Sequence record: NC_070998.1
Strand: one strand, 5' to 3'
Length of the DNA: 64,000 nt
Shown one piece after another: positions 6,983-15,439 of this stretch (the first letter of the stretch is position 1; each line of letters starts with the position of its first letter). The position numbers were made by a program, and so were the translations under genes. The notes under the pieces were generated by a model that was given only the letters and a program-made list of their open reading frames with translations, searched no databases and was not told where the DNA came from.

Positions 6983-9241
6983 ATGTCAAAAGGTTCCGTA
7001 ATGAAAACGAATCTTGATCCTGCCAAATGTCCTTTCTGCGGTTCGCCCGAAGTGGAGTACCCAACACCCCGGACTGTTTATTCTTGCGGGACTAATGATT
7101 ATGACGGCCGCCCTGAATCAGCAATGCAATCTGAAACGTGTAAAGAGCGTGTGCTAGCTAAACCTGTTCACACTACCCAGTTTGAAAAGAAATTTGGTAT
7201 TAAGGAAGAAGATTGCAAAAACAAATATGAGTTGTGGTATTTCAAAACACTTCTTTCTTTACTGGAAGATGGAACAGTTAAAGACGACCGGACCAATACA
7301 GGAACACGTTCTATTCCGTTCCATACATATCAACACGATCTTCGTGAATCTTATCCGCTGATGAAGTCTCGTTATCTGGATCCCTTTAATCCTATTAAAG
7401 AAATGATCTGGATGTTGAGTGGTTCTTCTAATGTTAAACCTCTTCAGGAAATGGGAGTTCCTTTCTGGAATAGTTTTGCTGATGAAGACGGAGAGTTGGG
7501 TCCTGTTTACGGTGTACAGTGGCGTCATTGGAAAACCCCTGATGGTGAAGAAGTAGATCAAATCCAATATGTTCTTGACCTACTGGAGAATGAACCTACG
7601 TCTCGTCGTATGGTGGTTAGTTGCTGGAATCCATCCTTTATCCCAGTCGCTAAAACCGCACCGAAAGATAATCCGAAGCTAGGTAAGATGAGCTTGACAC
7701 CTTGCTTTGTAGCAGGAACACCTGTTTTAACACCACATGGCTATGTTGATATAGAAAGTTTAAACGCAGGAGATTTGGTTGTAACGGATAAGGGTAATAT
7801 ACAGCCGATAAATCATAAATGGATAACTGAATACACTGGCGAAATTATAGGCCTTTCTATGGTCTACCAGACAGAATTAATACAGTGTACACCAAACCAC
7901 CCGTTTCTAATTAAAAATAAAGGGTATATTGAATGTAAGGATATCAAGATTGGTGATAAACTTGGGATATTAAGGCCTAAATTTTCCGATCGAGTGCATG
8001 TAAACAACTGGTCAGTGTTAAATAGTTATCACCAAACCATTTCACATAGCGAGGAACTTAATAAAAACGATTATTATTTTCTTGGGTATTTTTTAGGAAA
8101 TGGATGGGTGTCACAAACACAACCTAGAGTTAGTGTGGCAATACCAAACAGTAAAGTGGAATGGTTGTTACCTAAAATAAGAAATTCGATAAAATTGATT
8201 CATAAACCAGGCATTTCCCCTAACGTAGCTACATACGCTACAAAATCGCAAAAGTGGTGGGGGTTGTTAAAAGAATTTGGTCATGGTGCTAGTAACAAAA
8301 AGATACCTGAATGGATTTTTACTTCCCCTATCGAGTTTGTAGAGGAGTTTATTAAAGGGTATAAAGACGCCGATGGGTTCGAATCTAAAAATAGAAAAGT
8401 GATCTCTTATACAACCACTTCTAGATCTTTAGCCTATGGACTTCAAAGATTATACGCTGGTTTAGGTAGACACGCGGCGGTATACAAACAAAAAAGACCT
8501 ACAACAACTATTATCGAGGGAAGGTGTGTAAATCAAAAAGACACTTACATGGTAAACCTTAGATCAAGAACAGTACATGATGTGGAAATGGATGGAGACT
8601 ACCTATGGGTCCCAGTGAACGGTATAGGGAAAAAGACAACTTCATGTTTGGTTTACAACTACGACGTAGGTCATGACCACACTTACGTGGTGCATAACTA
8701 CGCCACACACAACTGCCATTTTTCATTTGTTCTCACAGCAACACCAATGAACTTTGGTGACAGACTAAACTATTTCAAACATTCTCACCCAACCATCTAC
8801 AGTAATCTTTATCCAATCTCTGGTAAAGGTTGGACCGAGCGTGCTGAAGAAGCAATGAATCATCGCAATGTTCCTAAGTTCTATCTTGATCTTAGTTTCA
8901 TCATGCGGTCTAATGACTTTATTCTTGGTAACCCCGCTAACCTGAATGAATACGCTGCTCTATGTATGATGTTTGCACAACAACGCAACATGATCGCGCG
9001 CTATGTCAATTACACTGGTATTGATGTTCATATCTACTCTAACCACATTGCTGGTGCTAGAGAACAGATTGATTATGTCAAGAAACATCCGGAGATCTTT
9101 ACTGATGAACCAGCTAAAATACATATTGGTTTGAACGGGAAACCTAATACAATATTTGAATACACTGTTGATCATTTTGTAGTCCAAGATTACCATCGTG
9201 AAAATACTGGACCGGTAATTCGTTTCCCAATTGCTGTATAA
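6983..9241 (+). CDS. thyA: thymidylate synthase precursor with intein and N-terminal Cys-rich domain
   Basis: DRTNTGT, GPVYGVQWR, SRRMVV, P/CH, MRSND, GNPAN, DVHIYSNH motifs; interrupted by 337-aa intein. Confidence 0.95.
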   Translation: MSKGSVMKTNLDPAKCPFCGSPEVEYPTPRTVYSCGTNDYDGRPESAMQSETCKERVLAKPVHTTQFEKKFGIKEEDCKNKYELWYFKTLLSLLEDGTVKDDRTNTGTRSIPFHTYQHDLRESYPLMKSRYLDPFNPIKEMIWMLSGSSNVKPLQEMGVPFWNSFADEDGELGPVYGVQWRHWKTPDGEEVDQIQYVLDLLENEPTSRRMVVSCWNPSFIPVAKTAPKDNPKLGKMSLTPCFVAGTPVLTPHGYVDIESLNAGDLVVTDKGNIQPINHKWITEYTGEIIGLSMVYQTELIQCTPNHPFLIKNKGYIECKDIKIGDKLGILRPKFSDRVHVNNWSVLNSYHQTISHSEELNKNDYYFLGYFLGNGWVSQTQPRVSVAIPNSKVEWLLPKIRNSIKLIHKPGISPNVATYATKSQKWWGLLKEFGHGASNKKIPEWIFTSPIEFVEEFIKGYKDADGFESKNRKVISYTTTSRSLAYGLQRLYAGLGRHAAVYKQKRPTTTIIEGRCVNQKDTYMVNLRSRTVHDVEMDGDYLWVPVNGIGKKTTSCLVYNYDVGHDHTYVVHNYATHNCHFSFVLTATPMNFGDRLNYFKHSHPTIYSNLYPISGKGWTERAEEAMNHRNVPKFYLDLSFIMRSNDFILGNPANLNEYAALCMMFAQQRNMIARYVNYTGIDVHIYSNHIAGAREQIDYVKKHPEIFTDEPAKIHIGLNGKPNTIFEYTVDHFVVQDYHRENTGPVIRFPIAV
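7703..8713 (+). mobile_element. intein with LAGLIDADG homing endonuclease domain
   Basis: block A CFVAGTPV, block B CTPNHPF, block C LGYFLGNG, block E IKGYKDADG, block F/G VYNYDV..THN; +1 residue Cys. Confidence 0.95.
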
Positions 9242-11192: not shown

Positions 11193-11726
11193 ATGACTTG
11201 TCAAGTATCAATGATTTTTGCTAGCGATAAAAATTCAGGAATAGGCCTCAATAATAAACTACCATGGGATTCAATCCCAGAAGACATGGAATGGTTTAAA
11301 CAATGCACAATGGGTAAGACTGTTGTAATGGGTAGAAAGACTTGGGAATCTCTTCCAGAGCGTTTTAGGCCACTTCCTGGGCGCACTAACGTTGTCTTAA
11401 CTTCTAATACTGATAACTTTATTGATGCAATTGTTTCACCATCGATAGGAGCAGTGTTGGAACGATTTAAAGATGAGAAAGAAATTGTTGTAATCGGCGG
11501 TGGTGAAGTCTACAAGTCTTTTGCTCCATATGTCACAAGAGTCTATCAAACCAACATTCTTGACAAACACCGCGTTGATGTTAGAATGGAAGTTGAATGT
11601 GACGATTGGGACCTTATTTATTTTGACGCCAGGAAAGGCCAAGATGGTCCCATATTCCAAATATTCGAAAAAATAGATGGAAATGAAGAATTAATAATTA
11701 GTGTTGAAAATATCTTACCTCTATAA
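11193..11726 (+). CDS. folA: dihydrofolate reductase
   Basis: IGLNNKLPW, EDMEWFK, VVMGRKTWES, RPLPGRTN, VIGGGEVY. Confidence 0.95.
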   Translation: MTCQVSMIFASDKNSGIGLNNKLPWDSIPEDMEWFKQCTMGKTVVMGRKTWESLPERFRPLPGRTNVVLTSNTDNFIDAIVSPSIGAVLERFKDEKEIVVIGGGEVYKSFAPYVTRVYQTNILDKHRVDVRMEVECDDWDLIYFDARKGQDGPIFQIFEKIDGNEELIISVENILPL

Positions 11727-14764: not shown

Positions 14765-15439
14765 ATGGCTAAGAAAATTTATTTGCAGTATGGTTGTATG
14801 AACAGTTCGAAAACTGCCAGTATGATTATGACACATTTCAATTATCGGGAACAAGGTCAAAACCCGATGATTCTAAAACCCAGTATTGATAACCGAGAAG
14901 GTACCGAACCTCTGGTTAAATGTCGTGCTGGTCTCTCCGCACATGCGGTAGTGTTTACTCCAGATACCAACCTGTTCTTTCTAGCGGCTAAACTATCCGG
15001 CGCTAAAGAAATTGATTTCAATCGATTAAACAAGCTGGTGGCTGAGACCGAAACTGAACATGAACAAATGGTTAGGTTCGGACAAGGTTTTGATAAAACC
15101 GTAGATTGTTTCCTAATCGACGAGATTCAATTCCTCACTATCGAACAAGCTAAACAGATTACCGACATTGCTGACTATCTCGATATTCCAGTGATGTGTT
15201 TTGGTCTTCGTAACGATTTCCAATCTAACCCATTCCCCGCTTCTGCTTATCTTCAAGCAAATGCCGAAGAGTTAAAAGAAACAAAAGGAATGTGTTTCTG
15301 CAAGCGAAAGGCAACACATGTTCTTCGAGTGGATGACGAAGGCAACGTGATCAAAGAAGGTGAACAAATCTGTGTTGGCAACAATGACAGATATCATAGT
15401 GTATGTCGTTACCATTATAAAGCAGGAGTTTTCAGGTAA
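14765..15439 (+). CDS. tdk: thymidine kinase
   Basis: YGCMNSSKT, IDEIQF, FGLRNDF, Zn ligands CFC..C, Y.SVCR.HY. Confidence 0.95.
   Translation: MAKKIYLQYGCMNSSKTASMIMTHFNYREQGQNPMILKPSIDNREGTEPLVKCRAGLSAHAVVFTPDTNLFFLAAKLSGAKEIDFNRLNKLVAETETEHEQMVRFGQGFDKTVDCFLIDEIQFLTIEQAKQITDIADYLDIPVMCFGLRNDFQSNPFPASAYLQANAEELKETKGMCFCKRKATHVLRVDDEGNVIKEGEQICVGNNDRYHSVCRYHYKAGVFR

Follow-up and report, generated by a model that had tools for sequence, protein, structure and literature searches.

The thymidylate synthase gene (thyA) of the Aeromonas phage PS1 (genus Ferozepurvirus, MN032614.2), a 237-kb jumbo phage of A. hydrophila, contains a real and unannotated intein, which represents a new host protein and a new insertion site for a well-known kind of element with an ordinary mechanism. 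The stretch of DNA analyzed (the window) comprises 64,000 nucleotides of record NC_070998.1 and corresponds to the last 64 kb of the phage genome; window positions equal record positions minus 173,367. With a probability of about 0.8, the element is a mobile class 1 intein that carries a LAGLIDADG homing endonuclease, lies between Pro240 and the catalytic cysteine of ThyA, and behaves as a selfish element and not as a regulator of its host enzyme. Its persistence is best read as the consequence of occupying a site that the host cannot change, and, on present evidence, it reveals no new mode of regulation of nucleotide synthesis. The "thymidylate synthase" of 752 amino acids (aa) in the public record is thus a 415-aa enzyme plus a 337-aa intein, and its re-annotation is due.

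The reading frame of PS1_0191 is uninterrupted over 752 codons (Table 1), and the region 6983-9241 of the window has a 100% match in both PS1 and PS2. Pfam splits the thymidylate synthase family (PF00303, Thymidylat_synt; 209 bits for the precursor) in two, with the N-terminal half spanning residues 86-221, and places between the halves the Hint_2 (4e-10), Intein_splicing (4e-8), LAGLIDADG_3 (2e-12), and Hom_end (2e-6) domains, on which the GenBank annotation is silent. At the junctions the DNA reads ...ACA CCT↓TGC TTT GTA ... CAC AAC↓TGC CAT TTT... (arrows mark the ends of the intein), where CCT (7700-7702) codes for Pro240, TGC (7703-7705) for the intein Cys1, CAC AAC (8708-8713) for the terminal His-Asn, and the following TGC (8714-8716) for the Cys+1 (Cys578), which precedes His-Phe. 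These boundaries are exact to the residue because four intein-less relatives, namely the phages ACP1, AVP1, and pAEv1810 and the metagenomic contig L013, carry the empty site KMSLT(P/A)↓CH(F/Y)SF and read straight across the point. All four align to the PS1 flanks with no further gap, so that excision restores a contiguous host protein; the intein-less ThyA of ACP1 and AVP1 is 414 aa long, and L013 is devoid of the intein while its coding sequence is 94% identical to the PS1 exteins in DNA and 99% in protein. Judging from these alignments, insertion at this exact point is far beyond chance. Of the members of Ferozepurvirus, PS1 and PS2 carry the intein, and the others are without it. A preliminary description of this DNA had proposed a class 1 intein whose +1 nucleophile is the catalytic Cys of ThyA, and this is borne out by the frame, the Pfam domains, the empty sites, and the splicing residues; of the range that it assigned to the intein (7703-8716), the start stands, whereas the end includes the codon of the Cys+1 and has to be moved back to 8713.

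The codon at position -1 (window 7700-7702; L013:2424-2426) varies among the ThyAs of Aeromonas jumbo phages: it codes for Pro in PS1, which has the intein, and in AVP1 and pAEv1810, and for Ala in L013, ACP1 (L002), and CF8 (L029), all without it. No clean link between the -1 residue and the presence of the intein emerges among these six. A Pro-to-Ala change acting as an "immunity" mutation was considered and is unsupported, as AVP1 and pAEv1810 are intein-less and yet keep the Pro.

The residues required for class 1 splicing (Cys1, the block B Thr and His, the terminal His-Asn pair, and the Cys+1) are all present in PS1 and are invariant or nearly so across 189 aligned relatives. Position 4 of block F (window 8657-8665, V317-Y318-N319) is Asn, where many class 1 inteins have Asp, and the VYN triplet recurs in 177 of the 189 inteins of the clan. 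The residue adjoining the block B Thr, Cys62, is likewise a Cys in 50 of the 88 ThyA inteins found at the same site. In the AlphaFold model of the precursor, the mean predicted local distance difference test score (pLDDT) is 80 and reaches about 90 over the intein; Foldseek matches the modeled intein to the endonuclease-bearing VMA intein 7QSU (E 6e-19) and also to PI-SceI and PI-PkoII (1VDE, 2CW7), and the best sequence match to a solved intein is weak (E 2e-10) and confined to the first 87 residues. Sequence and model together identify the PS1 element as a class 1 intein with a HINT fold, which is intact and looks functional.

Table 1. Predicted features of the thyA locus of phage PS1 and neighboring nucleotide-metabolism genes, in window positions (↓ = end of the intein).
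Feature	Position	Strand	Remarks
Precursor open reading frame, 752 aa + stop	6983..9241	+	PS1_0191, annotated "putative thymidylate synthase"
N-terminal extension, 85 aa	6983..7237	+	Cys-rich, outside the ThyA fold, no family match, low-confidence model
N-extein, ThyA core, aa 86-240, ending ...KMSLTP; Pro240 = -1	7238..7702	+	Pfam PF00303 positions 3-139, E 7e-41
Class 1 intein, 337 aa: HINT splicing domain with inserted LAGLIDADG homing endonuclease domain	7703..8713	+	
Cys1, N-terminal nucleophile of the intein (N-S acyl shift at the Pro240-Cys241 bond)	7703..7705	+	invariant in 189/189 aligned inteins
Block B T-P-N-H (Thr63, His66)	7889..7900	+	T..H in 189/189 aligned inteins
LAGLIDADG motif 1, LGYFLGNGW	8081..8107	+	GNG for GDG; usual catalytic Asp = Asn
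LAGLIDADG motif 2, KGYKDADGF	8354..8380	+	catalytic Asp retained
Penultimate His336 + terminal Asn337	8708..8713	+	block G; Asn cyclization releases the intein
Cys578, +1 splicing nucleophile and ThyA catalytic Cys of P-C-H	8714..8716	+	equivalent to E. coli Cys146
C-extein, ThyA, aa 578-752 + stop	8714..9241	+	Pfam PF00303 positions 160-258, E 2e-19; contains RSNDFILGNPAN
Dihydrofolate reductase gene	11193..11726	+	PS1_0197; record 184560-185093; 2 kb downstream of thyA
Thymidine kinase gene (tdk, salvage route)	14765..15439	+	PS1_0201; record 188132-188806

According to the established class 1 mechanism, translation would yield the 752-aa precursor, in which Cys241 (the intein Cys1) would attack the carbonyl of Pro240 through an N-S acyl shift. 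Cys578, the future nucleophile of ThyA, would then take over the N-extein by trans-thioesterification, Asn577 would cyclize with the aid of His576 and release the intein, and a final S-N shift would restore the native ...LTP-CHF... junction with a free thiol in a 415-aa ThyA. The earlier suggestion that one thiol serves first in splicing and then in catalysis follows from this scheme, and ThyA can reasonably be taken to be inactive in the precursor. On the same mechanism, the PS1 intein would splice constitutively and efficiently; the expectation of efficient splicing leans on the conservation of the -1 Pro, which is found in 163 of 184 inteins over four classes of insertion sites. The released intein, or its endonuclease domain, would in turn cut or nick an intein-less thyA at co-infection and be copied into it by repair.

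The host protein is recognizable as ThyA by several features. Specifically, the intein-less protein P0002 passes the NCBIfam model TIGR03284 "thymidylate synthase" with 157 bits against a cut-off of 108, the best sequence matches of the spliced form in the PDB are bacterial ThyAs (the 60 listed are thymidylate synthases save one designed hydrolase on a ThyA scaffold), and both extein halves of the AlphaFold model together fit E. coli ThyA with a target template modeling (TM) score of 0.89-0.91. Aligned by eye, KMSLTP-CHFSF corresponds to KMALAP-C146-HAFFQF of E. coli, and excision restores the P240-C578-H579 motif, in which C578 and H579 do not vary in the alignments A2 and A5. Both the sequence and the model thus point to ThyA as the host protein and to the +1 Cys as its nucleophile. 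Moreover, the C-extein retains the RSxD...LGxPxN motif with Asn (RSNDFILGNPAN), a residue that, in place of Asp, we take to indicate deoxyuridine monophosphate (dUMP) rather than deoxycytidine monophosphate (dCMP) as the substrate, that is, a thymidylate synthase and not a dCMP hydroxymethylase. The downstream dihydrofolate reductase (DHFR) gene fits a ThyA that forms thymidine monophosphate (dTMP), because DHFR is needed only if dihydrofolate is produced; the Asn and this neighbor are consistent with methylation of dUMP.

The ThyA of PS1 departs from that of E. coli in some respects. Its N-terminal extension (6983-7237), which has no Pfam match and a pLDDT below 50 over residues 1-64, contains four cysteines (Cys16, Cys19, Cys35, and Cys53) in a zinc-ribbon-like CxxC...C...C arrangement that is invariant in PS1 and its Ferozepurvirus relatives, and the metagenomic intein-bearing ThyAs P0004-6 lack it. 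Compared with E. coli, the core has insertions of approximately 13 aa before KMSLTP (7640-7702) and approximately 45 aa after CHFSFVL (8735-8880), and in the HMMER alignments residues 222-299 of the spliced form have no counterpart in solved ThyA structures.

The evolutionary behavior of the two components differs in the way that homing produces. The exteins of PS1 and of the intein-less L013 differ by 0.0077 nonsynonymous (dN) and 0.31 synonymous (dS) substitutions per site (dN/dS about 0.025), from which strong purifying selection on the exteins and maintenance of ThyA function are deduced. Three metagenomic ThyAs (P0004-6) share with PS1 a same-site intein that is 70-72% identical, whereas the N-extein cores are 52-56% and the C-exteins 37-38% identical. 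Together with the empty sites of close relatives, this gives the intein a patchy, horizontally spread distribution. In the same comparison, the endonuclease domain (72-74% identity) is as conserved as the splicing domain (61-73%), and its dN of 0.24 with saturated dS points to purifying selection on the endonuclease as well, which, from the established mechanism, is presumably active. A selfish element is favored over a retained regulator because the closest relatives lack the intein and because it keeps its endonuclease domain and is more conserved than the exteins.

Some observations weigh against this picture of an active mobile intein. In motif 1 of the endonuclease, the catalytic Asp is replaced by Asn, which may reduce the enzyme to a nickase or leave it inactive; the replacement is nevertheless shared by 41 of the 88 ThyA inteins at this site (37 have Asp), which marks it as a conserved trait, and the alternative to a nickase may be an endonuclease with an asymmetric active site. 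The comparison of PS1 with L013 (L013:1707-2951) gives no clear signal of a co-conversion tract around the site. Specifically, dS is 0.43 in the N-extein (6983-7702) and 0.17 in the C-extein (8714-9238), with just two differences near the site, at -3/-2, and none from +1 to +53; the uneven dS and the 53 nucleotides free of differences may be a trace of recombination, although not a conclusive one. Lastly, Pro at -1 is reported to block or impair most of the inteins tested, whether natural or engineered (PMC6486613).

The same observations bear on other explanations of the locus. The preliminary description had suggested that dTMP synthesis could be gated by conditional splicing, sensitive to redox state or metals, with thymidine kinase as a back-up; the intein would then be kept as a switch that acts on Cys1 and Cys+1. 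Redox- and zinc-sensitive inteins do exist in other proteins (RadA, DnaB, SufB, MoaA), and the PS1 precursor has cysteines at both junctions and Cys62 beside block B, which makes a disulfide trap chemically possible but is a generic trait, the only one of the intein that speaks for gating; furthermore, the tdk and DHFR genes are nearby, and regulatory inteins in phages have been argued for (PMC5050341). However, many relatives have Thr, Ser, or Ala in place of Cys62, which is not conserved across the clan, the PS1 sequence has nothing that sets it apart from constitutive splicers, and the nearest relatives do without the intein, including the allele with 94% identical extein DNA. Retention across the host lineage, which is expected of conditional inteins, is contradicted by its absence from L013, ACP1, AVP1, and pAEv1810, while an endonuclease domain under purifying selection, in an intein that has diverged less than its exteins, bears the mark of horizontal spread. 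The proposed gating thus finds no specific support, and a regulatory role is improbable.

Less credible still is a dead insertion, in which the intein would not splice, thyA would be a pseudogene in PS1, and the phage would rely on the ThyA of its host and on its own thymidine kinase. The generally unfavorable -1 Pro (PMC6486613), the Asn in place of Asp at block F position 4, the loss of the motif 1 Asp, and the presence of tdk could be taken as signs of decay; yet the 752-codon frame is intact with all the essential splicing residues in place, and the low dN/dS of the exteins with respect to the intein-less allele argues against a dead gene. Moreover, the odd residues (the -1 Pro and the VYN triplet) are conserved clan-wide, and thus are traits of the lineage rather than marks of decay. 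It is equally hard to sustain that the host enzyme is a ThyA-fold pyrimidine hydroxymethylase for DNA modification, in which the Cys would still be the nucleophile and the consequence for the pathway would be different. The two unusual insertions around the catalytic Cys, the unaligned residues 222-299, and the fact that a single NCBIfam thymidylate synthase equivalog cut-off is passed while PRK01827-type models fail would be compatible with such an enzyme, but the matches in the PDB are to thymidylate synthases, and this identity was rejected as unlikely in view of the TIGR03284 score, the Asn of the specificity motif, and the neighboring DHFR gene.

The frequency of the insertion site was assessed in protein collections and in deposited genomes. 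An exhaustive HMMER search with the precursor against 1.84 billion cluster representatives, of which the best 150 of the 7,622 proteins with E<=1e-10 were used, and a second search with the intein alone against 5.8 billion proteins provided together 186 full-length related inteins, with junctions called automatically. At least 88 of them occupy the catalytic Cys site of ThyA (..(L)PP↓C...HN↓CH.., hereafter P↓CH), at least 14 a second ThyA site in the GPxYG loop (..GP↓C...HN↓CYGFQW), at least 80 motif IV of C5-cytosine DNA methyltransferases (GxP↓C...HN↓CQxFS), and at least 4 more are located elsewhere. The contigs inspected are phage-like: a phiKZ-type capsid gene occurs on one and a T4_Y16D domain on another, and the others are large phage contigs. 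Conversely, among approximately 50,700 deposited phage genomes, with 2,869 records that match ThyA, an intein-containing ThyA is present only in PS1 (two accessions) and PS2. The uncommonness of the site supposed in the preliminary description therefore holds for deposited phage genomes and fails for metagenomic proteins, with at least 88 inteins at P↓CH, and part of the claimed novelty is lost. Scans of the GTDB species genomes found no ThyA-type copy, and a scan of IMG/VR with closer alignments found distant relatives only, although both rest on a few short patterns and are weak evidence. As far as deposited genomes show, no cultured phages other than PS1 and PS2 have a ThyA intein, which makes them the one available experimental system for this class.

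The thymidylate synthase inteins in the papers searched are in ThyX, in agreement with the preliminary description, which called inteins well known there: they are listed under IPR003669 (bioRxiv 10.1101/2025.01.02.630785), under COG1351 (PMC4760082), or as "ThyX-like" (PMC5050341). No report of ThyA inteins, of inteins at the PCQ motif of methyltransferases, or of a PS1 genome paper that mentions the intein was found in the searchable literature, so that the P↓CH site, common in uncultured phages, is apparently undescribed there.

In the second ThyA site (P0094, P0157, P0167, and others), the +1 Cys replaces the usual Val or Ile, and some proteins (P0094, P0157) have inteins at both sites. 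Beside the ThyA inteins of two metagenomic phage contigs lie other mobile elements: an HNH open reading frame that splits a gene for the small subunit of ribonucleotide reductase (L008:780-2924) and a 1016-aa neighboring protein that also contains intein and LAGLIDADG domains (L032:4419-7469).

Several known systems resemble the PS1 intein in part. The PI-SceI/VMA and PI-PkoII inteins share with it the Cys1, the block B T..H, the terminal His-Asn, and the Cys+1, as well as a HINT fold with an inserted two-motif LAGLIDADG domain, whereas the P↓CH site in ThyA, the native -1 Pro, the Asn at block F position 4, and the GNG of motif 1 distinguish the PS1 element from them. Like other class 1 LAGLIDADG inteins, it interrupts a nucleotide-metabolism enzyme at a conserved active-site motif. 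ThyX and ThyA have unrelated folds and mechanisms, and ThyX lacks a catalytic Cys nucleophile. Like the PS1 intein, the ThyX inteins of mycobacteriophages, actinobacteria, and cyanobacteria are phage-borne and interrupt a dTMP-making enzyme (PMC5050341, PMC4760082), but their site is different, and they are not among the relatives recovered here. Thymidylate synthase genes of phages and bacteria also harbor group I introns with GIY-YIG endonucleases, which in phages home into conserved regions of thyA/td (PMC5009752); the introns of T4 td (I-TevI) and of Bacillus thyA (I-BmoI) are, like the PS1 intein, mobile, self-splicing, and neutralized by splicing, while they differ in splicing at the RNA level, in the family of the endonuclease, and in the insertion sites.

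The nearest relatives outside ThyA are the inteins in motif IV of C5-cytosine methyltransferases (GxP↓CQxFS), which share with the PS1 intein the -1 Pro and a +1 Cys that is the catalytic nucleophile of the host enzyme and attacks the C6 of a pyrimidine; conversely, the host is non-homologous, the +2 residue is Gln instead of His, and the identity to the PS1 intein is 25-37%. C-5 methylases are listed among the intein hosts of actinophages (bioRxiv 10.1101/2025.01.02.630785). Among deposited phages, the top non-self matches are the methyltransferase inteins of UE-S1, Mannheimia 587AP2, Nyseid, and B22, all located in motif IV, between its Pro and its catalytic Cys, and 26-31% identical to the PS1 intein over the full length (E 9e-21 to 1e-27). 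With the intein alone as the query, ThyA or PF00145 proteins account for 79 of the 81 matches with E<=1e-10; among the methyltransferases, the best match (E 2e-52) is 36% identical over the full length, and some methyltransferase inteins outrank many ThyA inteins. Relative to the PS1 intein, median identity falls from 36% in the ThyA P↓CH inteins to 33% in a nested methyltransferase subclade, 29% in the remaining methyltransferase inteins, and 26% in the outgroups, so that similarity, as estimated from these alignments, is graded and not sharp across host classes.

In a maximum-likelihood tree of 51 inteins under a site-heterogeneous model, from which the outgroup TerL intein of crAss cr131 was excluded owing to an in-frame stop, the methyltransferase subclade (95/88) falls inside the clade of ThyA inteins (97/94). 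No bootstrap tree unites the ThyA P↓CH inteins as a single clan, and a quick tree of 152 rows concurs. Nevertheless, a tree that groups all the ThyA inteins survives the approximately unbiased (AU) test (p 0.16), so that the nesting is not proven despite the branch supports. The GNG of motif 1 was considered as a shared derived character of the ThyA inteins and the nested subclade, and discarded since the subclade mostly has GDG (13 Asp, 3 Asn). The wider family is not exclusive to the two hosts, as a phage NrdD intein falls within the clan of the other methyltransferase inteins.

All the main classes have a Cys at +1 of their junctions, and the ThyA and methyltransferase sites share the DNA core CCN↓TGYCA; the -1 residue is Pro in 74 of 88 ThyA P↓CH inteins, in all 80 of the methyltransferase class, and in 9 of 14 at the second ThyA site. 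These data could tentatively be explained by a large phage intein clan, that of the PS1 intein, specialized on Pro(-1)↓Cys(+1) that has moved more than once between two unrelated enzymes that methylate pyrimidines at C5, namely ThyA (P↓CH) and the methyltransferase (P↓CQ), and has also reached the ThyA site GP↓CYG, a scenario that we consider possible and put somewhat short of even odds, in which the tolerance of the -1 Pro and the shared core may enable jumps between non-homologous genes. If this were true, natural inteins would splice after a proline, which most tested inteins do not tolerate; a natural lineage with a native -1 Pro is of practical interest to protein engineers, for whom proline at this position is a standard limitation of intein tools. 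Related inteins at the catalytic Pro-Cys of both ThyA and C5 methyltransferases also offer a concrete case in which to study how a homing element changes its host gene.

Two methyltransferase loci stand out among these relatives. In the Mannheimia phage vB_MhS_587AP2 (L005:1264-3100), the methyltransferase frame breaks off immediately after HN↓CQ, and the gene, annotated as separate coding sequences, looks disrupted. P0027 (L026:6001-8550), of the methyltransferase inteins the one nearest to those of ThyA, lies on a 115-kb contig that also carries N-myristoyltransferase-like and glutaminase genes and looks like a giant virus of eukaryotes, not a phage.

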